Source of the DNA: Phallusia mammillata
Taxonomy: Eukaryota
Assembly (NCBI GenBank): GCA_965637545.1
Contig: OZ281500.1
Coordinates: forward strand, 2,914,001 to 2,978,000
Direction: 5' to 3'
DNA length: 64,000 nt
Shown here piece after piece: positions 5,899 through 60,700 of this stretch. The translations under genes were made by a program, and so were the position numbers. The notes below the pieces were generated by a model that worked only from the letters and a program-made list of their open reading frames with translations, did not search any database and had not been told where the DNA came from. Position 1 is the stretch's first letter, and every line of letters begins with the position of its first letter.

Positions 5899-8800
5899 GT
5901 CATTGAACACCGAGCAGACGTGGCGAGACTTCAACTTATGCTAGAGGTCGGAGGGATTTACTTGGACACCGACAGTGCGATTTTACGAAATGTTGACGAA
6001 CTCCGCAACTATTCAATGCTCTTAAGTGAATCCAACTATAACTCGCTCGGTTAGAGCCATTCAATTTTTAACCGTGTTTTTAAGTTGTTTATAGTGAATC
6101 GTAACTTGCAGAAACGCTTTTTAACTTGTTGTTAGCCTTATTTTATAATACATACAGTTGGGTGAAAAATAAAAGTCACGCAAATCTAAAAAGACAAAAA
6201 AGTGACCAAAAACTTGGTTGTCCAGTCGGTAAATTATCCACCTGGATAAAACGCCTGTTTATTTGAGCCAAAGCGAACATAGCGTAAAGTTACTTCACTT
6301 TTCTTTGAAGTAATCAACATTTTCACTGGCACAAATCGCTCTTTGATAAACTAATGTCGTTAAAGCAATCTTTTTCAACCTTTTTTTCAAAACGAGGCAT
6401 CTTTTTTCTACTGGTAAAATTTTGCCGCACTTCACTAACTAAAACTATTAACTGATGACAATTATGTGCGCACAATTTTTAACTGGAAAAAGCCAGAAAT
6501 CAAGCAATAATTAGACTGCAATTGTTACCTCGCCAGCCGTACCTTAACTTGGCCTAAAGCCTCATCGCTTTGAAAAGTAACATGATTTTTTTATTTCTAA
6601 AGGCACACAAGTCAAAAATCACTTGGTTAAAGAATATGTGATTTGATTATATATCCTAATTATTACTGAGGGCAATAAGAATCCTCTGTATCTTTTAGTC
6701 AAAATTCAAAAGCGTATATCTGTGTTTTTTCATTTACAGCAAATGGAATTATTTTCGCCAACAGAAAAGCCTGGTTTCTGCGACGATGGTATCACGAATA
6801 CAGATACTTCAAAGATGCTGCGTAAGTTTTTATTTACCGTTGGATTGTGTGTAAATACAACTGAACATTTCAGTGTTGTAAACAGGCTCTAAACATACGC
6901 CCCAAACACGAAAATACAACCAAAAACCCATACTTTTCAATGATGAATGTTGAATTGAATTCACAAAAATAAACTAATTTGTGACATATGTGTTGTGGTC
7001 AAGATGCAGTGAAGTGTGTCAATATCGATTTCTATTAGTTGTGGCGTGGTGATTGTCGTGTCTCGTGTCGTTTACCGTACGTTTTACACGAGGCACCTTA
7101 CAGTTATTGCGTAATTCCTTTTCGTGTCAGTTTTTGCAGTGCATAGGACTGTTAATTAGCATTGTATAAGGTTTATTATTGTAAAGGTAGTTGTGTGTAA
7201 GGTAACTACAGTGGATTAGAGTGTACTAGTTGATGTATGGATAATTTAAATGTGTGTGATAATCTGACCATGCTAGTCGTATATACCTTTTATCTTTTTC
7301 TCGTGTTAGTAGCTTAACTAAATTCTCTATTTTGTATTTCTATTTGAATAAGACACTAAGCAATGTAAATCTGTGTGGGAGCTGCTAACGCAGAAATCTG
7401 TTCTGTTGTGACTGTCTCGATTGATTCTGATCTGTCTTGTTTGTCCTGACTATCTGCTGTATCTTAGACTGTACTAAACTGTACTGTTATGAACTGTCCA
7501 GTTTTGTTGTACTGTGGTACTCGGTATTGGAATACAGCCTTCGTTTTATTGCTGCAACATATCAGTGTGACAGACAGCATTTGGCGGTGCAAGTAACCCA
7601 CACAGTGGCCAGTTAGAAAGCTAGCTGGGACGTGGAATCCGAACCAAAGGGTTTTGTATTCTACATAATTTCTGCGTCACAGTTTGTATTGCGCACAAAC
7701 TGTCACATTGCATCAAGTACCTGTTATACTGCACAACATGGATGAAAGAAATTCAGATGAGATGAACTCCAAGAGCAGCCATTCATCTGTTACAAGATCA
7801 AGACTTCTTAAGTTACAAATTGAAGAGCAGAAAAGAAGAAATGAGCAGCAGATTGAACAGGAACAAATTGAACTGGAACTCCAGGAAAAGAAGATGCAAA
7901 GGCAGATGGAACTGGAACTTCAGGAAAAGAAAATGCAACTGGAACAAAGGATAGAAGAAAATCGTGCACATTTGCGCAGGCAAAGGCTTAAGATGACAAA
8001 TGAACTGCAGGCTATGGTCTCAGAAAATAAAAGAGCTGAGATTTTATCCCAAGCAGGCTCTAGACCGGTATCGAGAGCAGACTCTTTAACTGATGAAAGT
8101 CCTTTGGTTAAAAATCGGGTAGGTCCTTACCAAATCAAAGATTTCTGCAAAACTCCAGTGGTACAATTAAATGCAGATGCAGATGTTTTGCCCGGACCTG
8201 TTAATATCTCACAGGAAGTAATGCCACAAGTAGTGCAAGAAGAAAACTTACCACAACCGACATGTCAATTTATGCCACAACATAATGCAAACGGACATGT
8301 TTATGGCCCTAACTTTTACCCTGTTTCACCACTTTATCCAAGTTACACTGAACCCAGTGTTTCTTACCCCACTCCCAACTACAATAATCCTCCTGTTACC
8401 AAGTACCCGCCTGTGCCCATTCCTACCTACCCCATACCCACTGTACCTAGTGCTCAAACCAATCCTCATCAAGAATCGAAGACAGATTCCCATTTTCTGA
8501 AAGCCATGAAAACAATTACAAAATCTATTAACAATGGGTTTTCAATGCCCAAAATCAGCATGCCAAAATTTAATGGCGATCCATTGAAGTACACTGAGTT
8601 TATGCAGAAGTTTGATGCAAACATAGCTAGCCAACATGAGCAAGATGAATTCAAGCTACTGTACCTTAGTGAAATGTGTGAGGAAAAGGCAAAAGATCTT
8701 ATATCAACTTGTGGTTTAATGAAGAACCCCAGTGAAGGATATACAGATGCAAGAAACAAGCTTTATCAACATTTTGGTCAACGGCATATTGTAATCAGTG

Positions 8801-11800
8801 CTCACATCAACAACCTAATAAATGGTCCAGTGATCAAACCAAATGACATTGAAGGCCTTGGTGTACTATCCAGGCCAATCCAAAACACACTTAATATATG
8901 CCAAGAATTAAATTCGTTGTCAGATGCAAATAACCAAGTATACCTTGGAAAGGTGTTTAACAGGCTTCCATACCATATGCGTGTTAAATATGCAAACAAA
9001 TGTACCAATTTGTATAGAGAAGGAAAATCGCCAGACTTTCGGCACATGACAGAATTTGTAGTTAACAAAGACGTTGGCTGCAATACATTTTATGGAAAGT
9101 TGCTGGCTGAAACAAAGGCGCCAGCTACAAGACCAAATCGAACAACAAAAATTGGAGCATTTTCAACTGTGGCTTCTGTTGAAACAAGTTCCAACATCAA
9201 GGAGAAAACTGGCACTTCAGTTGTTTCCCAAGTTACAAGAAGACAGCCAGAACTATGTCCTGACTGTAATAGCAATCACCCACTATGGAAATGTTTACAG
9301 TTTAAAGCAAGAACTGTGCAAAAGAGAGCAGAACTTGTTAAAAGGCAGAACCTTTGCTTCAATTGTTTGGGTTCGAATCATTTTATTGCTGAGTGCAAAA
9401 GTGAAAGAAGATGTCAAGTTGAAAACTGTCATGGGAAGCACCACACATTGTTGCACCAACAGAAAAGCTATCATCAAAGAGATGAAATACCGGGGTCCAG
9501 CAGGTTAAGTGGGGCCGGAGCCAACCAAGTAGAAAGAAGAACGAATACATTGCAACAGAACCCCAGTGGGGCCGGAGCTGACATCACTTCCGGTGGCATA
9601 TCATGCAATCTACCAGCCAAAGCAAAGGTTAGACTTAAAGTGGTCCCTGTATGTGTGTGGACAAATGATAAGAGTAAGTTCATTAATACTCATGCATTCC
9701 TTGATGAAGGATCAAATCATTCTCTTTGCACTCTAAGTCTTATGCAAAAATTAAGGACCAATGGAACTGGGAAAAGGTTCTCAGTGTCTACTGTCAACGC
9801 ACAGCGCCAATATTATGGTGTTCATGTAAAGCTTCATGTTCAGGGGATTGGTGAATATACCCCATACTTTCTTCATGATGTGTTGGCAATTCCTAAATTG
9901 CCAGATGTTAAAGGAAGCATCCCAGTTCAAAGTGAAGTTAGTCATCATCGTCACCTTAATTCAATTCATTTCCCCCAGTTGTCACATAATGATGTTGACT
10001 TGCTCATTGGGGCTGACATGATGGAACTGCACATCCAAAGGGAGACTGCAGCTGGAGAACCAGGGTCACCTCTTGCAATTCGGACTGGTCTTGGATGGGC
10101 TTTATTTGGGCATGACTGCAAATCATCAAGCGATGATCAAGTAAAAATAAACTCACTGTACTGACACCATACAAAATCAATTTCAAAGAATGTATGATAG
10201 TGACTTTCAAGACCTCAATTCGCATGACAAGTTACACCATTCTATTGATGACAGAAGAGCATTAAAAATAATGCAGGATTCTATTAAAATGGTAAATGGA
10301 CATTACGAAGTTGCTTTACCTTGGAAGTCAGAAGAAGCTAAACTGCCATACAACCGTTTAATGGCAGAAAGGAGGCTTACTTACCTCAATAAAAGATTTA
10401 TTAAGGATGAAGAACTTTTTGGCAAATACTGTTGTAAAATAAAGGAGCTTTTGGACTGTGGATTTGCAAAAAGAGCACCTCATGTTAAAACCCAAGGAAG
10501 AACATGGTATATTCCACACCATTCTACTGGTCAGAAGTTTAAGGTAGTATTCGATTGTGCTGCAAAGTTCCAAGATGTTTCACTCAATGATCAGCTTCTT
10601 CAAGGGCCTGATCACACTAACAAACTGGTTGGTGTACTTCTTCGCTTTCGTCAAGAAAGAATAGCTATTGTTGCAGACATTAAAGGGATGTTTCACCAGG
10701 TCAGGGTCAACCCAAAGGATCACGATGCACTATGCTTTCTTTGGTGGCCAAATAATGATATGACACAACCACCCGTTGACTTTCAAATGGTAGTACACTT
10801 ATTTGGTGCTACCTCTTCACCTAGTTGTGCTGGATTCGCCTTGCTACAAGTAGCCAAAGATAATCTACTTCAAGCTGATGAGACCACTCTGCAAACTGTC
10901 AAACACAATTTCTATGTGGATGACTGTTTGAAGTCAGTAGCTACCCCTGATGAAGCTATAAAGCTTGTAAAAAATCTTGCTGACCTACTTCACTGTGGTG
11001 GATTTCATTTAACAAAATACCTCAGCAATGATCGAGATGTTATAGCCTCAGTACCTGAAGTCGACAGAGCCAGGGCCACTTTAAATCTTGATTTGGATGA
11101 AATGCCAGTTGAACGTGCTCTTGGCGTCCAGTGGAATACTTCTAGTGATCAATTTGAAGTTCAAGTGAACATCAAACCTAAGTCAGCCACCCGACGGGGT
11201 ATACTGTCTATGTTGAGTCAAATATATGACCCATTGGGCTTTGTGCAGCCATTTATGCTTCCGATCAAGAGGCTCATGCAAGACTTGTGGGATCATGACT
11301 TAGGATGGGATGAGCAGATTAAAGATCGTCATTTGAAGGTTTGGAATCAGTGGCTGCAACTTTTACCCAATCTGGAGACTGTGTCAATTCCAAGATGTTT
11401 AAAGCCTATGCATGCAGAAGTAAAAGTATATCAAGTGCATTGTTTTTGTGATGCCAGTAATGTAGGATATGGAGCCGTGTGTTATCTCCGTTCAAAGGAT
11501 CCATTGGGCAAATGTTGCTCATTTCTGATGGGTAAAGCAAGAGTTACCCCCAAAAAGCCAGTAACAGTTCCAAGGTTGGAATTAACTGCTGCCGTTATTG
11601 GTGTGAAGTTGACCCAATAATAATAAGAAGAATTGGAATACAAAATTGATGATACCGTCTACTGGACAGATTCTACATCAGTGTTGCAGTACATTAGAAA
11701 CAAAAGTGCTCGTTTCCAGACATTTGTTGCCAATCGATTGTGTATGATACAAGAAGCCTCACAATGCCGTCAGTGGAGACATGTGCCAACTGAGAAAAAT

Positions 11801-14800
11801 CCAGCAGATATTGCCTCCCGTGGTTTGATGCCTGACAAAGTAAAACGAGCTGCAATGTGGTTTAAAGGACCAGCCTTTTTGCATGAAGATGAGGAGCACT
11901 GGCCTTCCAGACCTGCTTCTTTGCCTGCTCTGAGTGATGATGACCCTGAATTAAGGAAAAGTCCAAAGATTTTTGCTTCTATTGTGGCAAAGGACACCAA
12001 TCCAATGCAATCACTTTTTGACTACTTCTCCCAGTGGAACAAGCTTCAAACTAGTGTAGCTTGGTTTTGTCGATTTAAGCAGTACTTGCACTGGAAACAT
12101 ACTGGGCAATCCAAGCCAGTCTCTGGCAATCTAGTGCCAAAAGAATTACGCAAAGCAACCACAGACATTATCAAGTTTGTACAGTATCAGGAGTATGGAT
12201 CTGAGTTCAACAAAGTTAATGATTTGCAATCAAAGGCTCAAATGAGGAACCTAAACAAGTTGAAAAATATTCACAAGCTTAATCCTGTCATGATCGATGG
12301 AGTTTTATGTGTCGGTGGGCGCCTGCAATTGTCTAATTTGTCAAATGATGCTAAACATCCAATTCTGCTACCATATACATCACATGTAACTCACCTAATC
12401 ATTGATGCCTTCCATAAAAGGAGTGGACACAGTGGAACACTTCACGTACTTGCAAGAATTAGAGAGCATTTCTGGATTGTAAAGGGACATTCAGCTGTTC
12501 GCCAGGTGCTAAGAAGATGCACAAAGTGTGGGCAATACAATGCAAAGATTGGTGTTCAGATAATGGCACCTCTGCCCTCATCAAGGTTAACTCCTGGGCA
12601 TCCACCATTTTACCACACTGGTCTAGATTATATGGGCCCAATTCTGGTTAAAGTTGGCGGCAGCCAAGCCAAAAGATATGGCTGTATCTTCACATGCATG
12701 GCTACTCGAGCAGTGCATATCGAGATAGCCTACTCATTGGATACTTCCTCCTTCTTACAGGTTTTTCGCAGATTTGTCAATCGACGAGGATATCCCCAAC
12801 ACCTGTACAGCGATAATGGTTCCAACTTTGTGGGTGCTGAGCGAGAGCTACAAAGTGCACTGAACCAATGGAACCAGTTGCAGATCCACAACCACTGCTG
12901 TCAGCATGGAACAGAGTGGCACTTCAACCCACCTGCCTCTAGTCACCAAGGAGGAGTGTGGGAGAGAATCATTCGATCGGTTCGCAAGATTCTAAGAGGT
13001 CTAGCAGGGGAAAGGACTTTGAGTGATGAGTCACTCCATACATTTATGGTGGAAGTTGAGAGAATCCTCAATGACCGTCCACTCACTTCCTTGAGTGATG
13101 ATCCAATAGATTTGGATGCCCTGTCACCAAACTCTTTACTGATTAGAAGACTACAACCTGGTCTTCCACCTGGACATTTTGTGAAAGCAGATGGTTATCG
13201 GAAATCCTGGAAACATGTCCAGTTTCTGGCAGATGCTTTCTGGAAGAGATGGTTGAAGGAATACCTGCCTCTATTGCAGCTCAGACAAAAATGGCTGCAA
13301 CCACAACGCAACTTCAAGAAGGGTGATCTCGTGCTGATGGTCGATGAGAACAATCCACGTGGAGCCTGGCCAAAGGCGCTGATTGAGGAGACATTTCCGG
13401 ATGGCGAAGGAGTTGTTCGAAGAGTTCGAATTCGCACAGCGAATTCTTCCTACCTGAGGGACATTCGTAAAATATGCTTGCTGGAGGAAGCTGCCTGATA
13501 GCAGCTTTGATATGTGAATGTCTGTTGCATCTTGACCCTATTATGTTGTAAATAATTTCATTTGTTCAATTATTGGGGCCGGTATGTTGTGGTCAAGATG
13601 CATTGAAGTGTGTCAATATCGATTTCTATTAGTTGTGGCGTGGTGATTGTCGTGTCTCGTGTCGTTTACCGTACGTTTTACACGAGGCACCGTACAGTTA
13701 TTGCGTAATTCCTTTTCGTGTCAGTTTTTGCAGTGCATAGGACTGTTAATTAGCATTGTATAAGGTTTATTATTGTAAAGGTAGTTGTGTGTAAGGTAAC
13801 TACAGTGGATTAGAGTGTACTAGTTGATGTATGGATAATTTAAATGTGTGTGATAATCTGACCATGCTAGTCGTATATACCTTTTATCTTTTTCTCGTGT
13901 TAGTAGCTTAACTAAATTCTCTATTTTGTATTTCTATTTGAATAAGACACTAAGCAATGTAAATCTGTGTGGGAGCTGCTAACGCAGAAATCTGTTCTGT
14001 TGTGACTGTCTCCATTGATTCTGATCTGTCTTGTTTGTCCTGACTATCTGCTGTGTCTTAGACTGTACTAATCTGTACTGTTATGAACTGTCCAGTTTTG
14101 TTGTACTGTGGTACTCGGTATTGGAATACAGCCTTCGTTTTATTGCTGCAACATATCAGTGTGACAGACAGCATTTGGCGGTGCAAGTAACCCACACAGT
14201 GGCCAGTTAGAAAGCTAGCTGGGACGTGGAATCCGAACCAAAGAGTTTTGTATTCTACATTATGCAGCTACATAATTTAATTTTTTTTTTAATTTAAATT
14301 TAACTTTTTCTTAAATTACCATCCAGGTAAAGAAATATACATTAAGACACGAACCGAAAGAGTTTAATAAACCTATAAACTCGTATAACACAGGGAATCA
14401 ACAATTGCGCTCAAGCTGACTCGTAAAACACAATAGCGTTGGTGAAACGGTCTTTATTAAAACAGCCTTGTTATTTCAACTCCGTTACGGTGTATTGGCT
14501 TCTGATGAATGTGGGTTCACATTTTACCGTCCTAAATTTTCTGAGCAAAAACAACACGAGCCATTACGTTGGAGGAAAACACTACAGCATTTTCATCTCA
14601 GTTTCTGTCCCGTTCCATTCCAGCGAATAACGCCAACAGCAGCGATGTAATTTCCGTCCTTATTCAAGCGCCCACCTGTATAACGCAGTGTTATACACAT
14701 GCCGATAAAGGTGTGCTGTGTTACAACAGAAGGGCAACTGCAGCGGCTGTCACCATTAAACTAAACAGTTGTATTTAATTAAAAGAGTGCATAAATCACA

Positions 14801-22900: not shown

Positions 22901-25900
22901 TTAATATTTTTGCTAGTTTCAGCAGAAGACCATCATGCCATACTGTATCATAGGCAGCTGATAAATCTACAAATATGGCTCCAGTTGTAGTTTTTAGTTC
23001 ATAACCCGTTTAATGTGTGATGTTAAAGCCAGGACTTGTTCACTGGTACAACGTTGTTTTCTGAACCCAGATTGTTCAGGAGGTAGGAATGGTTTGATTA
23101 TTGGGGTAATTCTGGCAAGGGGATGATTCTTTCCAATACTTTGTAGGTGCAGCATAGAAGAGAAATTGGCCTGTAGCTGCTTGGTTTGGTTGGATCGTTT
23201 GTTGGTTTCAGGATTGCTATCACTTTAGTTGTTTTCCAATCTTTGGGGAGTTTTCCGGATGGAATAATGTCTGTCAGTGCGTTCCTGAGCCATTAAAAGC
23301 TTTAGTAGCTCTTTTATTTCTGACATTAGTGTGTGTGATGACAGGTTAGAATCGTCGGTGTATGTGTGGTATAACTTAGTTGATGGTATTCTTTCCTTAC
23401 ATATCTTTCGAAAGTGTGGTTTGGTCGATACTGTTCTCGTTGTTTGATTTCCTTTGCGATTTTGTTTGCACTGATCGGAGCTGCAGTTTTGGGCATTGAT
23501 GTTGAATTCGGGTCCAGTTCATGTAAAAGTGTCCATGCTTTACGACTTGAATGCTTGAAGTCAAGATTTTCAACTATGTTCATCCATCTCCTATCTTTAT
23601 TAAGCGATGATAATAGTAGGTCTGCTGTGTTATTGTCTTGTTTTTAATCCAACTGTAATTATTATAGGCCGGTGTTGGCTGTGTGGGAAGGTGGGCAGCA
23701 TTTCTGTAGTTGCTGGCAATGCATTAAGTTCATCGTTTTTGGAAACGAGACATCGAACTTTTGAGTAATCTTTGTTCCATCTTGAGGAATGAAAGGTACC
23801 CTGGGTTTTGCTGGGGTCTTATAGTAGATGAAGATTTGTGTCATTTATCCATTGTCCTAATTGTTCGCCTGCTTTGTCATTTTCATTATACTACCATTCG
23901 GTGTTGTGGCTGTTAAAGTCCCTAATGTAAATAGTGGGCTGAGGAAAGGGTGGAAGAGGAGGATTCGGCCATTGTTTGTTTGGTGGTTTGTACAAGTTAA
24001 CAACAGTTAGTTCATTGATTTTTACTGTCGATCTGTGAATGTTGTTGCATGTTATAACTTAGTCCAATTTTGTTGCTGTAGAAGGGTTTTTGGCATAGGT
24101 GCAGATCTCGCATTTGTCATGGCAGATTTTAGATATGATAGTGTACCCTGGTATTCGGGTCTTTGATTCCGGTGATGTTGCTGTAGCGTTGGTTTCTTGG
24201 AGTAGAGCGATGTCGACTTTATGTTGCTCGAGGATTTTCTCAAGATATTCGCATTTGGACATTTAACTTCCTTCGATGTTAAGTGATAGGATCTTTGTCT
24301 GGTTGCAGAGTTCCATGGAGCCTAACTTATTTTTCAAACCTGCTGGGCTCTGTAGGTTGTCAGCAGGAACGCGAACGTTTTTATTCTGGGCCACGTTCGA
24401 TCCAGCATTTTGTTTCTTTTCTTTGTGACGCATCATAGTAAGTAAGGTGATTATTCAGAGACGTGTACCCAGGATGACGCATTGTTGTTTGGGTACCTGG
24501 TTGGACTCGATCTTAGTGATTGTAAGCCCCTACACCAACGACAAGGTGTCGAGTCCCATAGTAAGGGACTGTTATGGTAAACGTATTTTACGTATTTTAT
24601 CTTATTTATAAAATATTGTTATGGTAAACGTATTTTATAAATAAAAACAATATGTCCGAAAACGTTTGACAAAGCATGTCGTTCATTTAATAATGTAGAC
24701 TATTCTAATACTTGGTACTTAAAAAAACACTCTTGTAAATAATTTCCCCAAAACTGTTCGTTTAAACGTTATGTTATGAACCATGTAATATTGTTGTAGT
24801 CATTTTGCCCTTGTCGTGTTTACAGATAGCTGAAGTTCAACAGGAGATTTCAAATTTGTCCTACAAAGTTCCAAATCTCATTCATTACATCTGGTTTGGC
24901 TGCAACCGAATGCGTGTTGACCATTATATAACGTAAGAAAGACCTGAGTATTAAATCTTTAATTCATTTTTTTTGGTATTGCCATTAGTAAGGGTCGATA
25001 CTAAATTAATATGACTCTTATCTGACAGAAAATCTAACCTAGTACGTATAAAGCTCAGCTAACTTTTTTGCCCTGCTTCATATACTTTAAGGGCAGTCGT
25101 TATTTTGTGACTCGGGCTTGATATTTAGCCTACGTTTCAGAGTTGTAAGTTAAATTCGGAACTGTAGCGGTCACATGCAATAGCGTAGAACGTAGGGCAA
25201 ACGGATGCATATGCCACATTTTCCCACACTATATGACGCGCGCTCTAAAAAATAAATAAGAAGCAGGGCCTGCGTTAGTTTAGAAAAGACTAAGCTGTTT
25301 AATTTAACTTAAAGCTTCAGAATTAGAAATTTTAACAGTGACTAGAATATGATAATTTCTGTTTAATTTAAGGCTTCTGAATTCGAAAATTTAACAGTGA
25401 TTAGAAAGTGATACCGTCTTTTTAATTTAATTTAAGGCTTCTGAATTCGAAAATTTAACAGTGATTAGAAAGTGATACAGTCTTTTTAATTTAATTTAAC
25501 GCCTCTAGAATTAGAAATATCAACAGCAGATAGGAAATTATAAAGTTGTAGTTTAACTTGAAGTTTCCGAATTAGAAATGTTAACAGCAGCTAGGAAATT
25601 CTAAAGTTGTAATTTAATTTGAAGTTTCTGAATTAGAAATATCAACAGCAGATTGGAAATTGTAAAGTTGTAATTTAACTTGAAACCCCTCTGGATTTAG
25701 AAATTCTAACGGCAACTTGGAAAATTATAAAGTTTTAATTTAACCCGAAGCCTTTGGGCTTAGAAATTTTAACAGCGACTAGGAAAATTATAAAGTTCTA
25801 ATTTAACTCGAAAGCGCCTGGATTTTGCGACCAGCGACCCATAAGGTCTAATTAAAACAAATTAGATCATCTGTTAATTAAACATTGATAAACTAGTGCC

Positions 25901-28900
25901 TTCCCTATAAGGGGCTAGTGTCAGCGCTAATATTTACTAGAATAAAAACATGTTTAGTTAGGTTTTAGTAAGGAGATTAATACAGGTTTAACGGCTTTTC
26001 CTTTGTCTTTCTTTGCAACACTAGTTATTAATTGCTGTTAATGTTAATTGGATTCTATTTGAATAAGTGGATTCTATTTGAATAAGTGGATTCTATTTGA
26101 ATAAGTGGATTCTATTTGAATAAGACTTCTTGAAACATCTCTGTCGCTGGAAACCAAAATAAACCAACAGTGTAGTCAACGGATTATACAAGTGGTGTTT
26201 TCTGGAGTTTATCTCCAAGGAATCTTGATGCAGCAGTTTGAACTATAAACTTAGTGAGACTCCTAGCGCAAACCTATTGCGTTGTTAATTCGTGAGAGTA
26301 GCATCACCAGTCCTTGAAAACCGCGCAAGAACTCCCGCAGAACCGAACTCATTTTTTTGTATTAAAGCCCGAAATAAGCCGAAACCGAACAAAATTACGA
26401 CATGTATATAGTGCCATGTGGTGGTGAATGCTTGGTGACCGACTGGTTCGGTATGACGTCTTTAATAGGCCTGGAGTAGCCTACTGCGATTTATTTGTGA
26501 GTGTGCTGTGATCGCTGGTCTGCATAGACGCTTAAGGGCTGATCCCAGTGTTGAATATGTGTTCATCTTAACTAAGCTATACCAGGTTGCTCCCACCAAG
26601 CACTCACAGTAATTATATCGACAAGCACGTTGTCTGCACATGGCCAGTAATATACAAACATTGTGTACGTTTGAGACCTAAGTCGTTTAGGGCTAGTTTT
26701 AAAAACTACAAGAAAAGATTTTTATCAATACTTATATGTTTGTACTTGTAGTTTTAAATAAATATAGATTTTTTTGCACCATGTCCACATTTTAACTTCG
26801 AAAAGTAATTATAGCCTACACGTCACTTTTATGTACTTTCTCATCTGCAAGTTGACTAATGGCAAGTTAACTGTCTTTTATTTTGATTTCATCAAGGATC
26901 TTAGGAGCTTTGCGGTATCAGAAGCCTCGTCTCATCCTCATCCACGGAGACTGCGCTCCATCCGGGGAGTACTGGGAGCGATTGATGAAGCAGGGAGGAG
27001 AGAAGATTCGTCTCGTTCGGAGGACTCCACCAGAAATAATATGGAGTATCCCCATCAAGGTATGTTATATAGCCGGGCTACTCAATTAGGTTTGTCATAG
27101 ATCCAGATACAAAAAGGTCAAAATCAACGAGGTCCGGACACATCTGTCAGTCGTAGTCAATTTTGGTTGTAACTAATCGTGGTCCAACATAAACACAATT
27201 GTGAAAGCCGCATGTATGTCAGCAAAACAAACGCTTGTATCAGACACTAAACTGTAATTTACTCTTTGCAAAAGTATGGCACAACATACAAAACACATTT
27301 TATCTAGTTTTGTAGGAACACTTTGGCAATGATTCAAAATTAAGTTTATTACGTCACAGATAAAATTATGGGCAAACAATGGCCGTTTTGTTAATTTTTT
27401 GGTGAAATAATGAACCATTTTTTCGTCACAGTTTCACAATCTGACCTCACTTAAGATCTTTGAAAGCTTTAGCTGTCGTAATTCCCCCCAAAAATCTGTT
27501 TTTTTTTCAATTAGGCCAAGAGCAAATTGAAATTCAATGTAAGTGAAACTCAAATATATGATCTCTGTATTCAAAAGTCTTATAACCTTGTTTGTTTTTT
27601 TTGATTTTGTTTTTTAGTTTGCAACCACTACCCACAGTTAGACTCCAGCTATCAGTTTTGAAAAACACTTTATATCACTGGTGAAACCTTCCACTTAATA
27701 AGCTGACAGTTTGTATACACACATGTTTGTCCAGGTCATTGAACACCGAGCAGACGTGGCGAGACTTCAACTTATGCTAGAGGTCGGAGGGATTTACTTG
27801 GACACCGACAGCGCAATTTTACGCAATGTTGACGAACTCCGCAACTATTCAATGCTCTTGAGTGAATCCAACTATAACTCGCTCGGTTAGAATCATTTAC
27901 TTTTTATTAACTGTGTTTTTAGTTGTTTGGCGAATCGTAACTTGTAGAAACTCTTTTTAACTTGTTGTTAGCCGAACCTGTTTTTAATGCATACAGTTAA
28001 ATAAAAAGTAAAAGTGAAGCAAATCTAAAATAGCAAAAAAAAACTTGTTGTCCAGTCTGTGCATTCTTGACCTTCTTGATAAAATATCTGTTGATTTGAG
28101 CCAAAGCGACCATAGCGTAAATTTAGTTCATTTTTCTTTGAAGTAATTTTACAATTTATATTTTTACTGGAACAATTCCTTCTTGTGAGGAAATGACAAA
28201 TGGATTTATAAAGTGTTTTTCAGCCTTTTTTGTGCCAAAAACAGAAATCAAGCAATATGTAGGCTGTAATCGTTGCCTCGAAAGTGTATTGTAACTTGGC
28301 CTAAAGCCATATCGATCTAAAAAGTAATAAGATTTTTTATGATTTATAAAAACATCAAAATCATTTGGTTAAAGAATATGATTTGGCTATATTATCCTAA
28401 TCATTACTGAGGGCAATAAGAACCCCTTGCAACTTTCTATTAAAATTTAGAAACTTGTCTTTGTTTTCTTATTCACAGCAAATGGAATTATCTTCGCCAA
28501 CAGAAAAGCTTGGTTTCTGCGACGATGGTATCACGAATACAGATACTTCAAAGATGCTGCGTAAGTTTTTACCGTTGGATTGTGTGTAAATATGCGGGGG
28601 CTCGCGCGGTATTCAAGACGTTCAAACTGCTGCCTCATATTCCTTAGAAATAAACTCCAGAAAACACCACTTGTATAATCTGATCTTCCGAAGATAATTC
28701 TGCGTAGCTGGCTAAAATAGTATCCACTGTGGCGACAACTGGGTGTTTCCCCAAACTGCGTTAATCAGTCACACGTAACCGAACCGCACAATACGTCACG
28801 TGCCTTTTTCCATTTGCAAGGTGTCTTATTTTGTTCTTTCTGTCTTGTGTTCTTTTTTTCTTTTTTTTTTATTACGATAACAAGTAAAATGAGAAAGAAT

Positions 28901-31900
28901 ACGAACAAGACAAGAAATACGCCAAGTCAGGTACGCGACAATCAAAGGCCGGACCACTTACGTAAAAAATCAGGGCGTTTGTTGGTTTTAATTGCAAGTA
29001 GAAACTCCGAGTGTTTTAGCGTTTTTAGGGAATAAATAAATCTTTGCAAAGTTGGTTTGCTTTGCGCGTATTTGCTCTGAAAAATAACATATCGCGCACA
29101 CAGAAGGATGCAGTTCAGTAACAGTTCTTGGTCATCAGTTCCAAATAAACATAAAATTGCACGAGGTCTAACATCAATTAACAGTTTGCTCGAAATCCAC
29201 GCAGTAACATTTTCCCAATACTTTGCAGTTACAGTGCATGAGTAAAAAAGATGTAAAAGGGTTTCTGGAGAATCTTTACAGAAAACGCACTGTTGTGAGG
29301 GTACTATGCCAACTGTATATAATTTATCATTAGTTATGATGGCTCTTAAATTCAATTTCATTTGAAAGGCTCTTAATTTTGTTTCTATCGTACAAATATA
29401 GTTATTAATGTATATGTGTTCCCAGTTTGGTATATTCGTTCCCGTATCCAAATCCCTTTCCCATATTTCTTGTTGGTGGAGAGGTGATTCTGTGGTGTAA
29501 TCTGTTACGTGTAGGTAGGCTTGTTTTACCTCGCTAAGTTTGGTGATTGTGTTTAACCAAAATGGGGTCTTTTGAACGTTTTCTTGGCTGGCATGTTTGT
29601 CTAGTTCATCCCAATTCGCTGGGATGGCAGAAACCAGTCTAATAAATTCAATGAATCCGTGATTGGTTGGTGTGAAGTTAAATCTTAATGCGAGGTCGTC
29701 GTAAGTCATATAGTGGCCTTCTTTGTTAATTAGATCGTAGTAACTAAGTAAACCGGCGCGAATAAGAGTTGGGATGTAGAACGCATTGGAGCGATATTTA
29801 ATTTCTTTGTTGAGCCAAAGGGGCCTAGAGATGTTTGTGGGTAACCTAGTTAGTTTAGCAAAAAGTTTGCAATCGGACACTGCTTTTCGTAGCGTGCGAA
29901 GTGGTATTGATTTTATGTAAGCTTTTGAGGTGGGCGAAATGTTACTGCTTAACCATGAGTTGAATACTCTTGAATTGGCAAGTGAGGTTTCGATGGTTTT
30001 CCAGGGAGACGTATACGAATCATCAAACAGCCGGCTGACCCATTTAACACCGAGTGACACTAAGTACGCGTCGAGGTCCAGCATATTAATGCCTCCAGCC
30101 TCAATTTTTCCACATAACTTAGTGCGCTTGACCTTTTCCCACTTTGAGTTCCAGATAAACTTGAACATTGTCCTTTTGAGGTCTTTTAGAAATGCACTTG
30201 GCAGAGCGATAGGCACGACATTAACTTTGTAGGTCAGGGTGGGAATAGCCAAACTTTTCAGTATGCATACCCGTCCGATCAAGGTAAGTCCCCTAGAGGA
30301 CCAAATATTTAGTATTGTTTTGGTTTTTTTAATAATACCAGTAAAATTTAAGTCGAAAAGTTCTTTTGGCGACCCGTTGACAGGAAATTCGATTCCGAGA
30401 TAACGAAATGACGTCTCTGGCCATGTTAGGCCTTTATCTAGGTAAGGTTTAATCTGCGATGATCTTTTGGACCCAATGTAGAACGCTAACGATTTTTTGA
30501 TGTTTATTTTACAGCCCGACATAAAGCCAAACTCATTAAGAATCGCAAAGGCTCGATCAAAATTGTTTGGTTCCCCTTTAAAAAAAACCAGCGTATCGTC
30601 TGCCAGGAGCGACACTTTAAAGTCATTGCCCAATAAATGAATTCCTACTTCGTCATCTTTTCGCATCGCAGCCGCTAGGCATTCAATGGCAAGTACAAAT
30701 AAAGTTGGAGATAAAGGGTCTCCCTGCCTTACCCCCCTTTTGATACTAATTTGCCGTGACAAAAAATTATTGTTAATTATGGTGCTTGTGGGATTCGAGT
30801 AACAGCATTGTACCCAATGCAGAACATTATTTCCGAAACCAAATGTTTTTAATGCGGCGTAAATGAACCTCCACTCGATTGTATCAAAAGCTTTGTACAT
30901 ATCTAGAGACAGTATAGCCCCTGGATATTGTTGATTATCAGCAAGGTCAATCACATCGAACAGTAAACGAATATTATCCCCGATGAACCTCCCTTTAATG
31001 AACCCGTTCTGGTCTCGGTTGACGAGGTGATCCAGGTTGGATTTTATGCGGTTGTTTATGACTTTGGACACGATTTTATAGTCAGCGTTTAACAGTGTTA
31101 TGGGTCTATAATTGGTGATGAGCTGTTTGTCTTTATTGGGTTTAGGTATGAGGGTCACCACTCCTTGGCACTGCGTTGGACTAAAGTGTCCTACTTGCGC
31201 GGAATAAGTCCATGCATCCTTAAACATGTCCTTAAGGTCATTCCAAAATGTTTCATAGAACTCGACAGGGTATCCGTCTGGGCCCGGCGATTTATTTCGG
31301 GGCATAGATTTAAGTGATGCGTATAACTCGTTTTCGGAAATCGGCAACTCACTATTTTCAAACTGAGATTGATTTAACGTTGGCAAATTAAGTTTTAAAA
31401 GGCGTGATGTCACCTCTGATGTTGCATAATGAGAATCAGGCTGTTGGTAAAGATGTTCAAAAAATTTTACCAACTCATCTAAGATCACCTTTTGGTCTAA
31501 GCAAGCGTTATTGTCTATTTTCAATTGATCGATCGATTTTTTCAACGCATGGCGTTTTTCCAGGTTTAAAAAATACTTCGTATTTCTTTCGCCTTTTTCT
31601 GCCCACTTCGCTCGACTTCTTACCATCGCACCCTTTGTTTGGGCCTCTATTAGAATGTCCAATTCAATTTTTAATTTGGTTAGTTTTTCTATTAACTCAG
31701 GGTTACCTTGGGTTATTTCCTGCTCCAGTTTTTCTATTTCGCTCTCCAACTTCCGCTGTTTAGCAGAGTTTTTTCGTTTGACTTTTATGCTGTATTTTAT
31801 GGTTTCTCCACGAATTACGGCTTTTAAAGCATCCCACCGAATATGCGGATTTGTGTCACATTGAGCGTTGTTTATCTTATAATCCTGAATTGTTTTTTGG

Positions 31901-34900
31901 ATGATGGAAATAAACCTCTTATCCGATAGTAAATTTGTGTTTAATTTCCAATACCCTTTACCTCTAACAGTTTGTGAGAATTTAAGAGAGAATGATACGA
32001 TCTTATGGTCTGATTTTACCCCCTGTACAATATCGGCAGATGTTACTTTGTTATTTAGGTATTCCGAAAGCAGGAATAAATCGATGCGGGTAGCTACCAA
32101 AGGGTTAAGTTGTACTCGCGAAAATCTTTTGGTGGTCGGATGCATCTTACGAAAAACGTCGCATAAATTAAAACTTTCCATATGTGAGAGAATACTGTTT
32201 CGTGAATTACGATTGGGATTAGGGGGCCCTTGGCTTTTGTCTAAATTATCCTGCAGCGTTACATTAAAGTCACCGCCTATGATGAGATTTGAGTGATCCT
32301 CCTCGCCTACTTTCGCAAAAAGCGTGTCGAAAAAAACTGGGTCATCGTTGTTTGGCGCGTATAGATTGCAAAGTTTCAATTCGCGGTTGTTATATTCGAG
32401 GTCGATGAAAACGTACCTCCCTTCGGGTTCTACTTCTACGACTTTGGGTGAGTGCAAAAAGTTTTTTGTGAGCAGGATTGCCACACCTTTACTGCGGGTA
32501 GAGCCATGTGCCCAAACTATTTTGTTACCCCATTCTAATTCCCATAATTTTTCCTCATTAATTGAACAATGCGTTTCCTGGAGAAACATGATATGAAATG
32601 CCTTCCTTTTAAGAAAGTGAAATATAGTTTTCCGTTTTTTATGATTTCTTATACCCCCCACATTAAAAGAGGCAACATTTAATACAGACATCACCGAAAG
32701 AGAAAATTAAAAAAGCAAAAAACAACAACAAACTATTGATATTTCTGAACACCTTCTTCTATATCCCACTCATACTCAAACCCACAATTACAATTATAAG
32801 GTTGACTAGGTTCAATGTTGACAGCGGTTTTTTTCCCACAACTGCAGTGGACTAATTTTTTTCTACAGGCGGGATTTGAACATTCTTTGCTCATAGCTAT
32901 CTTAGGAAGAGCGTTAACTGTATTACATTCACAAGTAATGGCATACCTTTGGCATCGGATGCATTCGAACAAGTTTCCGTCCATTATGTATTCTGGTTGC
33001 ATTTCGTTACAGCATGGCATCAGCCTCATTGGTGCTTGACATTTTGGACATTTTGTTTCTGTTTCGAATTGTGGCAAAAGGAACAAGGTTGCCTCATCGC
33101 AACAAGCCTTAGCCACTATATATTCTTTTTTGCATTTACAGCAGAAGAAATTCCTGCAGTCTGGGTCCACTAGGCTTCCAGTATTGCAGCTTGGGCACTT
33201 TACTGGGATTGTGTATTCGCATAGACTACGAGATTTACTTTCCGGAAAATCTGTTGGGCTATTACGTGGTCGTTTGCGAGCCACTGTCGGGGCAATAATT
33301 GCCGAGATCTCCTGTTTTTCTTGGTTGATTTGTTCAACCTCATGTAATGCCTCTGGGACAGGGTCACTATCATACTGGAGGCGTTGAGTCGTCACCTCCT
33401 TATCTGAGATCTGGGTTTGCAAGCGTGACCCAGTTTCCTTATCTTGCGGCGCTGCTTGGGTTTTGTTTTGTTGCTGCCTGTTTTCTAACAAAGGAAAATC
33501 TTCCTTTCTTTTTGCACAAGCAGACTGTTTGTGGCCTGTTTCTCCACAGTATTTACAGGTAATTGCTTGACCGTGATATGTTACATAAAATTCACAACCA
33601 TGTACCCGGATGTAGCTGGGTATGGGGTTTTTTTCTAGATCAACTTTGTTCATGGTAAGTATCCTCATACCGGAAAAAAAGTCCTTCTTTGTCTTTTCTA
33701 TGTACTATTTTATTTACTTTGCCATAGTGCTCCACGGTTACGGGACCCATCCTACGCCTACATTAATCGTATCGCTTTCATACAGCCTTGAGTTTTGAAC
33801 ATACGATACCTCCAATAATTTCCTGTGCAGGTCCAAAACGTTTTCTCTTGTTGTGCAGGTTACATCCACAAGAGTGCCCTTCATTTCAGCTATTCCTACG
33901 ATTTTTCTTAAAGGGAAATTGATTTCCTTCATTAGGTTCCATAATTCTTCTCTTTTAAGCTGTTTCGTAGCTTTAAAACTCAAGCAGTTTGGCCTTTTTA
34001 GTGCACTCACCGCACTGTCGGTTGCCGCCTGCGCATAACTTGGCTTTTTGCTCATACCTCCTTCCTTCATGAGCGCCAGACACGTCTCTGTCTTGTGTTC
34101 TTTCGATATTTGAACTCGCTGCAAATAAACAGCGCTACAGTGGTGACCCCGTAACCTGAGAACGAATTTCTCAGGATGGAAGAGCATGCAGTATCTTTAA
34201 AGTTGCCGACATTTTCGCAACCGCGTGTTTGGTTTAATCAAGTAGAAGCACAGTTTGCTTTGCGGAAGATAATCGACGATAAAACAAAGTTTTATTACGT
34301 GGTTTCTGCATTGGATCAAAACACAGCACAACGTCTAATTGATTTGTTGGAACATCCGCCTGCAGAAGGAAAATATGAAGCGCTTAAGCAGCAAGTGTTG
34401 GACACATATTTTCTTTCAAAGCAAGAGAGAACCGCTCGTCTTTTAAATTTGCCTGATTTAGAGGACCGAAAACCTTCAGCCCTAATGGATGAAATGCTGG
34501 CTTTATTAGGCGATCACAAGCCGTGTTTCCTTTTTGAGCATCTATTTTTACAACAAATGCCAGAAGACATCAGAATTATTTTGGCAAAAGAGGACATCGA
34601 CGACCTTCGAAGTTTCGCCAAGAGAGCAGATGTTTTATGGCAAGCAAGGCGCGACCCAAATTTTATTGTTTCAAAAGTGCAGAGTCAAAGCAACAAGTCT
34701 TCTCTTGATCCACATGGAGAAGGCCTTTGTTTTTTTCATCAGCGCTTTGGGCCCAAGGCACGTCGTTGCCGCCGACCATGTATTTGTCAGGGAAACGAGC
34801 CAGCCGGCCGCCCAGATTGGATGCGACAAATCCTGGTCTTTTTGGCAGATTCCGATTTTTCTGTTAGTTTTCTTTTCTTGTCATCAACTTTGGCACCATC

Positions 34901-57700: not shown

Positions 57701-60700
57701 ACAAGGTAACAATTCGTAAAATCGAATACATGACTACATTTGTACGAATACAATTCGAATTGTTGTCAGCCTGTGGTTACGTAACAACGTAACAAGGCAA
57801 CGTAAGATACATAAATTCGAATACATGACTACATTTTTACGAATACAATTCGAATTGTCGATTACCTCCAGACTAGGAGTAGTCGAGAATATTTTGCTAC
57901 ATATTTTTGCCAAATAGATTCGAATACAATTCAAATTGGCAGTGAATGTGACCTGTTTTGACAAGTTTTTGTTAATGTTACGAAACAATGACACATGGAA
58001 GTTTAATGGTGATGTTATATAAATGGAATTGTGTTACAAAGCTTGCAACATTGGGTTGTTCTCAGCACATGACAGGTGTAGCGTGTTCATGAAGCAAACA
58101 TCTCATGTAAATTTGGTGAAATTTATATAACGGAGACTTAAATCAGTCAAGCTAATGTGGCAACAAAAAGCTCGTTGATTTACTTTTTTTACCAATAAAT
58201 TTGCAATTCATGAACCCATGTTACTTTTTGATCGAATACATTTTAAGTTTCAGGGCGCTTTTATGTATTTTATTTTCCGCAACTACAAATATCCGAATCG
58301 GTGCATTCGAATGCTATTCGAATTGTTTGCTTCTTACAACAAGTGAACAATTCGTGAATACAAATAACTAGAACTATTAATTCGAATACAATTCGAATTG
58401 CTACATCTCACCAAGGACGAAGTATTCATGAATACGAATACACGCTTGGGGTTTATTCGAATAGTATTCGAATTACACGTTGTTGTTTTTTGGTCAACTA
58501 TTCATGAATACTAATACTTGACACGCTTTATTCGAATACAATTCGAATTGCTGCTACCATAACATTACGAAACAATTCGTGAATACGAATATTTGATTCG
58601 CATTATTCGAATACAATTCGAAATGCCGAACTTCAAAAAGTGCGTAGAATTCATGAATACGAATACATGCCTCGGTTTATTCGAATAGTATTCGAATTAC
58701 TTGTCATTGTAGTTTGGTCAAAAATTCATGAATACAAATACTTGACTCGTTTTATTCCAATACCATTCGAATTGCTGCCACTCAAAAATTACCAAAGTAT
58801 TCATGAATTCGAATACAATCATGCAAGTATTCGAAAAGTATTCGAATACAGGACGCCTGTATTCGACCCCATGTCTGGCTAAGACATTGCCCTTCAAAAT
58901 AAGGACAAATCTTAGAAATAAGGACGGTATGGCAACCTTGGATAATGGGAGAAATCGTGGTCCAAGATCAACACATTTGTTTAACAGAATGTTTCTGTCA
59001 GCAAAACTAAAGTTTGAATTGGTCACTAAACATAAATTTGCTTCTCGCGAGAGTATTGACACAACGACTTTTACGTCATTTCATGACATTACACGGTATA
59101 TCTGTCAAAGAAACGTTTGAATTATGTAGCAAGAATTTGGTCACACAAATAGCCAAAAACGTCATAAACGCTTAGAACTCTCACCCCTTTTATATAGGTT
59201 ATGTAGATAAAGCGCATTTGTCCAATCAACATCTCTAGGTGAATGGTCTCTTGTTTTTTAAGTCAACCACTTTAACACGCGATTTCGTAATGGAAAACTT
59301 GTATAGTGTCACAAAGGTTGACAAGCCCGTATTTGGTTTGCACGCAATGTTTTGTACTTCGCTGGAGCAAGTTCAACACCAATATCGATGCCAAATCGAG
59401 TGTAACCGGCCCCTTCTTCCTTCGAGTAAATGTATTTCTCTCTGTTTTTTTTTCAAATATTGCTGACTCGTCTTCAGTATATATAAGGTGTATGAGTTTA
59501 CTCAACCACTCAACCATTTTTAGGAAGCCAGTCAACCATTAATGCTTACCTTTTAGGTCATGAACTGTCCCTGGTTTAAACGCACCGGGATATCCAAAAT
59601 TTAATTTGCTGTTGGGCATCGCAAACGTGAGATTGTAATGTGTCCCGTACCTTAGTAGAATGTTCTGCCAGATACAAAAGAATTAACGTTCAAAACCTAA
59701 TTGTCCAAGAGTTGCTATGGTAATAATATGATGTTACAGGCAATCGTTAGTGCACCGTGTGTGATATTCACTTTCGATTAAGGTTTGGACCTTTTAAATA
59801 CCCTAATGCTTTCGCAAGCATTCCGTAAGCAGGCACTTACAAATGTTTTTCACGCTTACTTTAAGATTGCGTATTTGCTATATTAGTTGGAATGGGTTTT
59901 GGACTTCAACGAATCGTCCACCGAGTAATTCAGTGCTAATGTGAAGTATCGTGTATTGAAGTTATACATAAGCGCGTATATTATCGTACGAGTGTCTGTG
60001 ATTGCATGAACGTTTTGTTTCGTCATCGTCACCTTTTCAGTACTCGACCTCGATTGTCATTTGTCGCTATTTAACACCTTTTATGTAGGGGTTTTTGGGG
60101 AATAGTGTTAACTGGCATAGCTCTGAAACATTATGGATTTTGGGTGTTTGGTTTAGTTCAAACCAAACTGTTACACAAACATGACAATGTAATAGGGGAC
60201 GTCGGTGAAAACGTTGGAGACAATTTCGAGCTCCGTGATCTCCAACGGAACGACGAGTAACCAAATTGGTCACCGAGTTTCCACTATTTACTTGTGATGT
60301 TTGTAAAACAATGTTTTATTATTAACACATGATTAAAACAAAATTAAGTTATTTTGCCGCATGTGAAATGTACGTTGAAAGTTGATGCATGATGAATTGC
60401 TTTGAATCAATACTCGACACTCCAACTCAGTCTTCCCCATGATCACACAAACGAACCATCTGCTAAAAGAAGTTCAACAAACTAACGAGACTCCATCGCC
60501 AACATCTTTGTTCTTCATCACGTTGGATCAAAACATTCTTACCAGGTTGTTTACGATCGAGGCCGTGTAACACTGTGACGATCACCATCAAAACTACGAC
60601 GATGTTGACAGAGGTCATGCAAAGTCGATCGGAGATTGACTATGCAGGATATCTAACAACATCAATGTCATCGGCTACCACATCGTCAAACTCGCCACGC

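Follow-up and report, generated by a model that had tools for sequence, protein, structure and literature searches.

The stretch analysed here, referred to as the window, comprises 64,000 nucleotides (nt) of Phallusia mammillata contig OZ281500.1 (2,914,001-2,978,000, forward strand; positions below are those of the window) and contains at 25163-26339, on the plus strand, a 1177-bp solo long terminal repeat (LTR) in which the exon of the host spliced leader (SL) stands in four tandem copies. The LTR opens with TGTAGCGG and closes with CCCGCA, has TG...CA ends that are shared by copies elsewhere in the genome, and is bounded by an identical four-base target-site duplication, GAAC, at 25159-25162 and 26340-26343. 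All sequence upstream of the SL array (25163-26048) is assigned to a putative U3 from its homology to the U3 of a relative described below (L041) and from a drop in conservation. It includes a tandem array of ~61-64-bp units (25300-25812; 8.2 copies by Tandem Repeats Finder), which is enhancer-like and whose units also occur in relatives, as well as a TATA-like TTATTAATT (26025-26033), for which its position 19-27 nt before the first SL would suggest a promoter role. The SL array itself (26049-26124) reads (TGG + ATTCTATTTGAATAAG) x4, with perfect copies of the 16-mer at 26052-26067, 26071-26086, 26090-26105 and 26109-26124 and TGG directly before each. Tandem Repeats Finder reports it with a period of 19, 4.2 copies and 98% matches, and the chance expectation for SL matches in dinucleotide-preserving shuffles of the window is 0.00. 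Downstream lie the remainder of the presumptive R (26125-26185), which holds an AATAAA at 26158-26163, 33 nt past the last SL, and whose 3' limit is guessed at ~20 nt past that signal, and the presumptive U5 with its CA end (26186-26339), a segment directly followed in full-length relatives by sequence resembling a primer-binding site (PBS). The SL thus lies inside the LTR, with 886 bp on one side of it and 215 bp on the other. The main components had been described in the first-pass annotation, namely the fourfold array inside a TG...CA segment with a GAAC duplication, the tandem repeat upstream and the AATAAA close downstream, and all are present in the sequence.

The 16-mer is this genome's own spliced leader. 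ATTCTATTTGAATAAG is the published SL of Ciona intestinalis (PMC1488885, Table 1), and a search of the 240-Mb genome returned 3,860 matches, against none for a reversed-pattern control, with GT directly after the SL in 3,179 of them. SL RNA genes form 553-bp units repeated head-to-tail (as at C3:11108000-11147500; unit in L045), each with the order SL, GTAAGC..., a short hairpin and a U-rich Sm-like site, and with C as the base preceding the SL (upstream ...AACGGC). An Rfam search at gathering thresholds, run on 20 loci that included the SL gene array and sites pairing the SL with hammerhead-like sequence, gave no match, neither for the 553-bp unit nor for the LTR. Two statements of the first-pass annotation, that the 16-mer known from Ciona is also the leader of the present host and that SL RNA genes carry GT right after it where the LTR copies do not, are thus upheld by the published match, the SL+GT copies and the gene arrays, in which the SL is identical to that of the window. 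The GT donor, hairpin and Sm-like site of the 553-bp unit are missing after the SL in the LTR: no GT follows any of the four copies, and ACTT takes the place of GTAAG after a 16/16 match. The lack of all three elements rules out the window array as an SL RNA gene or pseudogene.

BLAST of the LTR against the window found no second copy: apart from the self-match, the only hits were to the internal repeats and to 62 nt of U5 at 28620-28680. Genome-wide, the window LTR has at least 57 matches. Other copies have identical termini and different 4-bp duplications, such as GATC (L006), GATT (L008) and CCTC (the L041 element), and this combination of TG...CA ends with duplications that vary from copy to copy identifies them as true LTRs inserted by integrase. 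Given its ends and duplications, the full-length relatives and the absence of a partner in the window, the segment at 25163-26339 is the solo LTR of an LTR retrotransposon. To describe the family, 30 loci were oriented on the sequence just after the SL, and a conservation profile was drawn from 28 copies. The SL occupies the identical position in 30/30 loci; 18 of these SLs are intact, and the others are altered by one or a few substitutions or by a 1-nt deletion. The possibility raised at first pass, that other family copies lack the SL, thus did not materialize. The SL is always followed by ACTTCTTGAAAC(A/T)TTTCTGTCGCTG and, 33 nt after its end, by the AATAAA, whose columns are at least 90% conserved. 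Upstream of the SL, conservation falls, and two U3 types can be told apart, one reading ...GTTAATGTTAATTGG up to the SL (the window type) and the other ...TTTTCTCTTTAATTAC(G). A TTAATTGCT motif ~20-35 nt before the SL, the core of the TATA-like sequence, is common to both, the SL of the relatives lying ~20-26 nt past a TATA-like motif, and the statement that homology between the U3 subfamilies begins exactly at the SL had to be softened in view of this shared proximal motif and of shared distant U3 segments. Taken across the sampled loci, the SL is an ancestral, inherited, single-copy feature of the whole LTR lineage.

Full-length relatives place the LTR within a recognizable retrotransposon architecture, with a PBS-like TGGTGCTG... 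located 1-3 nt past the LTR end. In two of them (L042 and L043), no more than 3 nt separate a window-type R-U5 from a PBS-like TGGTGCTGTAAAAG..., and the interiors are decayed mosaics of other, nested repeats, for which reason the L042 interior was rejected as a classifier of the element. A better-preserved relative at C3:8.760-8.769 Mb (L041, with L077 and L078) is flanked by CCTC on both sides, has LTRs that are ~96% identical and carries TGGTGCTGCTATCGTGG 1 nt after its 5' LTR. Its open reading frames (ORFs) encode DUF7041 (gag-like), RVT_1, RT_RNaseH_2 and Integrase_H2C2 domains, which identify it as a Ty3/Gypsy-type element. It shares the U3 and SL with the window LTR but has a different R-U5, so that the superfamily assignment of the window LTR is indirect, and a genome search found no autonomous element carrying the window's exact LTR.

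The comparison of these two LTRs reveals the SL as the junction between an exchanged and a retained module. Over the final 203 nt of U3 the window LTR agrees with the L041 5' LTR at 93% of positions, and the SL is common to both; past the SL their local alignment score drops to 12, compared with 12.9 +/- 1.7 for shuffled sequences, with R-U5 lengths of 215 bp (window) and 786 bp (L041). The breakpoint may reach a few bases beyond the SL, as some copies share ACATCT after it. U3 normally diverges faster than R-U5, yet here the U3 is kept and the R-U5 is unrelated, which calls for recombination with a breakpoint at the SL. The L041-type R-U5 is nearly unique in the genome, being found in the element's two LTRs and a few partial relatives, with its distal half ~70% identical at ~10 loci, and this distribution suggests that it was contributed by a different family. 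The L041 LTRs have two further peculiarities. In the 5' LTR, a 305-amino acid (aa) ORF starts 35 nt after the SL and crosses the LTR end and the PBS; much of it falls in the distal half of the LTR, it matches no Pfam family, its Atlas matches are weak (at most 0.82), and it may represent either a captured mRNA or a chance frame. The 3' LTR (C3:8761243-8762330 region) contains a 1.09-kb insertion in its U3, whose terminal 72-77 bp have dozens of 100%-identical genomic copies, which suggests a very young small mobile element.

Several features indicate that the SL in the LTR derives from RNA. The LTR copy breaks off precisely where the exon ends, the SL intron being absent. Furthermore, since reverse transcriptases that reach a cap are known to place a C opposite it, copying of a capped 5' end should leave an extra G before the SL. 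Among the 473 genomic SL copies with A, C or T as the next base, a G precedes the SL in 218 (46%), compared with a G content of 20% in the window, and the G is also seen in 14 of the 21 independent families represented among 30 sampled dispersed sites. Two signs of relict SLs, the exact exon and the extra G that copying of a capped 5' end would leave, are found here. The junction G also varies among family copies with conserved flanks: the second U3 type reads mostly TTACG before the SL, and the G is absent from L017, L020 and L068 (TTAC) and from L028 (TCAC). The first-pass suggestion that the G before each SL is cap-derived consequently gains support from the enrichment before dispersed copies but does not extend to the window array, where the Gs are copies of the TGG that ends U3. 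The geometry of the LTR is in agreement, as the spacing of the SL from the TATA-like motif upstream and the AATAAA downstream puts it where R should begin. RNA material was available as assembled contigs of probable RNA runs only, which show neither transcript starts nor strands; one such contig of 1366 nt starts at the third SL base and continues through R-U5 and beyond the LTR, and offers weak support for an SL-headed transcript. Since one SL copy occupies the same place in every sampled relative, its transfer from RNA to the LTR probably dates far back, and it probably marks the start of the element's transcript.

The window LTR is one of several kinds of SL carrier in this genome. A young, full-length BEL/Pao element at 6991-14260 has 676-bp LTRs (6991-7666 and 13585-14260) that are 99.1% identical and ORFs with DUF1759, Peptidase_A17, RVT_1, rve and DUF5641 domains. 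Both of its LTRs contain a 15/16 match to the SL, TTTCTATTTGAATAAG (at 7337 and 13931), ~50 nt after a TATATA, and a degenerate SL-like stretch, ATTCTCTATTTTG, stands directly before it. As this element is unrelated to the window LTR, the SL is present in LTRs of at least two superfamilies. Beyond LTRs, the genome holds several hundred dispersed SL exons that are detached from SL RNA genes, and the sampled sites fall into LTR-like repeats with stacked SLs, hammerhead-like sites and apparent mRNA retrocopies. Ten dispersed SL+GT copies sampled on C1 (L031-L040) are not SL genes, since their downstream sequences are all different; some have an ATG soon after the SL, and they look like retrocopies of trans-spliced mRNAs. 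At eight C1 sites (L048, L052, L059, L062, L067, L070, L071 and L073), a hammerhead-ribozyme-like core consisting of CTGATGA, a short stem, GAAA and a TATATA-like stretch begins 2-7 nt past the SL, and some of these sites are arranged head-to-head as in Penelope-like insertions. One contig of the probable RNA runs also combines the SL with a hammerhead-like core. SL sites lying 5,937 bp apart (L055-L058, C1:2666709-2690768) were considered as an LTR pair and proved instead to be parts of a lengthy tandem or segmental duplication whose copies agree at 94% across at least 2.6 kb.

Transposons are plentiful around the window LTR, among them Gypsy fragments at 34-37 kb. A long interspersed nuclear element (LINE) on the minus strand (28942-33668) has an intact 1250-aa ORF2 (28942-32694; Exo_endo_phos, RVT_1 and zf-RVT) and a 311-aa ORF1, and could possibly represent the machinery that generates SL-tagged retrocopies; the 62-nt LTR U5 fragment lies just past its 3' end. 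A 75-bp tandem repeat at 58452-58691 has units that match the SL on the minus strand with three mismatches, and this resemblance is probably coincidental.

To account for the SL within the LTR, we favour, with somewhat more confidence than doubt, an explanation in which the window LTR belongs to an old Ty3/Gypsy-related lineage with the host SL exon fixed at the U3/R boundary, the SL having been reverse-transcribed from SL-headed element RNA and now forming the 5' part of R. The RNA of an ancestral element would have received the host SL by trans-splicing, and reverse transcriptase would have copied it to the capped 5' end, giving minus-strand strong-stop DNA that terminated in anti-SL, frequently plus a single C placed opposite the cap, and carrying the anti-SL sequence into both LTRs. 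At present, the LTR-encoded SL would constitute the first 16 nt of R and would head the element RNA. Two routes could bring this about: initiation at the SL or immediately ahead of it, downstream of the TATA-like motif, or renewed use of the encoded SL's terminal AG as a trans-splice acceptor. By either route the strong-stop DNA would find a matching SL+R in the 3' LTR, and SL-headed RNA would stay replication-competent. The shared SL could in addition serve as a short homology for strand transfer between different elements and so yield chimeric LTRs: strong-stop DNA ending in anti-SL, made from one element's RNA, would switch to the SL of a second element's 3' LTR. The proposal of the first-pass annotation that the SL was reverse-transcribed into R is thus strengthened by the constant place of the SL across the family, the cap-G signature and the module junction, but as an ancestral acquisition and not as an event specific to this copy.

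The fourfold array is a secondary feature of this copy. SL-TGG-SL occurs nowhere else in the genome by pattern search, relatives carry a single SL, and TGG forms the last three U3 bases in all relatives of the window's U3 type; since TGG thus ends U3 in single-SL relatives, the array is a tandem multiplication of TGG+SL, a private duplication of a 19-nt unit rather than the product of four trans-splicing rounds. A first duplication of TGG+SL was probably succeeded by out-of-register expansion. The first-pass annotation had also entertained repeated rounds, in which each of the four units stems from a separate cycle of trans-splicing and reverse transcription as in dinoflagellates. Such layering would not be foreign to this genome, where 22 adjacent SL pairs occur at ~14 loci and where, in other families, a perfect SL stands upstream of a more degenerate one in a manner that suggests differences in age (L049-L051, L076). 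For the window array, we nevertheless regard it as very unlikely: the four units and their TGG spacers are all identical, the TGG is the very triplet found upstream of the single ancestral SL, all relatives have one SL, the genome holds no other TGG-spaced tandem, the units lack a preceding AG acceptor, and an internal AG is absent from the SL. In the four stacked pairs mentioned (L049, L050, L051 and L076, on C1) a C separates the perfect SL from the older degenerate one, and in L050 and L076 the AATAAG of the older SL has become AATAAA, the canonical poly(A) signal lying one mutation from the SL.

Duplication of the SL has recurred within the lineage. Four independent cases were found: TGG+SL x4 in the window, GTTAATTGG+SL in L005, TTACG+SL in L024 and the L041 3' LTR, and the last 9 nt of the SL in L012/L044. 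In 4/4 the new junction has the SL 3' end on one side and, on the other, an upstream position that varies (-3, -9, -5 and +8), and neither microhomology nor boundary ambiguity was detected at the four junctions. Random replication slippage would not be expected to place the breakpoint at the splice junction every time, and this constancy hints at reverse-transcriptase jumps, in which cDNA at a variable RNA 5' end may have resumed on a template that ended, or was entered, at the SL 3' end. Genome-wide, the spacers of the 22 adjacent pairs are C, AC, none, GATTGATG or TGG, and a second four-copy SL array is present at C3:746155-746236 with the 8-nt spacer GATTGATG and a 24-nt period. These recurrent junctions bear on a broader reading of the data, which we put forward as tentative: LTR retrotransposons of this ascidian might replicate from SL-headed genomic RNA, the SL being a universal first segment of R that is renewed or tolerated in each cycle and that, being common to many unrelated elements, mediates strong-stop strand transfer between co-packaged RNAs of different families, thereby shuffling U3 promoters and R-U5 modules. 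On such a reading, the recurrent SL-3'-end junctions would be footprints of reverse-transcriptase jumps at the splice junction.

A more austere alternative is that the SL is a pure fossil, having entered once by reverse transcription and persisting as a neutral passenger in U3 or R that plays no part in transcription start, strand transfer or LTR exchange, with the chimeric LTR produced by unrelated recombination. We consider this rather improbable, although it accommodates several observations well. The SL columns are no better conserved than the adjacent R-U5 in the 28 copies, so that the notion of an SL more conserved than its flanks was rejected and no sign of extra selection, or of refreshment by trans-splicing, is apparent; many family copies have mutated SLs; and the two LTRs of the young BEL element share the same imperfect SL (first A to T), which makes an obligatory renewal of the SL from host SL RNA in each cycle unlikely. 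What a neutral passenger does not readily explain is the convergence of features on the SL itself, namely the homology break between the two LTR types at its 3' end, the four independent duplications with a new junction at the same point, its spacing to the TATA-like motif and AATAAA as R requires, and its presence in LTRs of more than one superfamily. Capture at the DNA level, whereby part of an SL RNA gene was taken into the LTR or such a gene once harboured the element, might draw on the abundance of SL RNA genes (3,179 SL+GT copies) and on the fact that retroelements targeting SL genes are known in other phyla. It is extremely improbable here, as the LTR copy ends at the exon end without the GTAAG intron, is preceded by TGG or ACG instead of the gene's ...AACGGC, and lies inside the LTR, with which it moves to sites with different target duplications. 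Hardly more credible is an origin by chance or convergence, with an AT-rich promoter or initiator motif that happens to resemble the SL, or a fourfold array created by misassembly. The region is indeed AT-rich and the count of four comes from the assembly, but all 16 bases match in the four window copies and in 18/30 relatives, the shuffles and the reversed-pattern control yield nothing comparable to the genome-wide matches, and a 76-bp array is trivial for a chromosome-scale assembly.

The explanation favoured above, of an SL reverse-transcribed from SL-headed element RNA and now leading R, has to be held against further considerations that weaken it besides the even conservation and the imperfect BEL leader. 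The contig that starts at the SL may reflect a break in the assembly graph where the U3 subfamilies diverge, and other contigs run from U3 through a mutated SL, indicating either read-through transcripts or the presence of DNA. Both the transcription start and the boundaries of R are placed from sequence position. The module exchange is documented by a single clean chimeric junction, not by a census, and the two U3 subfamilies, which share distant U3 segments, may simply have diverged. Finally, the mechanism leaves unexplained how a 16-nt non-homologous 3' tail would have been extended at the first strand transfer.

Relict SLs are best known from dinoflagellates (DinoSL retrocopies; PMC6050394, PMC12014239), which resemble the present case in that an intron-less SL exon is fixed at the 5' end of a retro-copied unit and stacked copies occur; passage through trans-spliced RNA is proven there. 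The carrier in P. mammillata is different, as the SL lies inside the terminal repeat of an LTR element and in both LTRs, and here it must suit strong-stop strand transfer. For elements that use target-primed reverse transcription, a 5' SL is simply the cDNA end, whereas an LTR element needs to carry the SL through two strand transfers and to regenerate it in both LTRs. The form of stacking differs as well: older dinoflagellate SLs are cut at an internal AG and abut a newer full SL, whereas the window units are full-length, with TGG spacers copied from U3, and the absence of an internal AG from the SL excludes stacking by re-splicing of this type. In Caenorhabditis elegans, a 2.4-kb spliced subgenomic mRNA of the Ty3/Gypsy element Cer1 was found with SL1, and its 8-kb gag-pol RNA undergoes no trans-splicing there (PMC3315495). 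Cer1 is therefore a precedent for LTR-retrotransposon transcripts receiving a host SL; no SL has been reported in the Cer1 LTR, however, in contrast to its presence within the LTR across the whole lineage here. The window LTR resembles ordinary Ty3/Gypsy and BEL/Pao solo LTRs, with TG...CA ends, a 4-bp duplication, U3 repeats, a TATA-like motif, an AATAAA and full-length relatives with a PBS and gag-pol, and it departs from them in that its presumptive R begins with a host-derived RNA-processing tag that is also the point of U3/R-U5 exchange. We found no description in the literature of an SL inside LTRs or of SL-tagged tunicate retrocopies, a provisional result as most subscription journals lie outside full-text search.

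SL trans-splicing removes the RNA 5' end, which in an LTR element is the R repeat needed for the first strand transfer, and should for this reason be lethal to replication; Cer1 genomic RNA escapes trans-splicing. An LTR-encoded leader, if truly at the head of the element RNA, would turn this conflict into compatibility and would at the same time provide a common 16-nt homology for the exchange of LTR modules between unrelated elements. Confirmation would thus establish a new adaptation of retroelements to host RNA processing, and the SL with its cap-derived G would serve as an inherent label of RNA 5' ends by which tunicate retrotransposition could be dated and traced. With several hundred dispersed SLs that lack the GT of the SL RNA genes, ascidians may join dinoflagellates as a second example of organisms with leader-tagged retro-copies.

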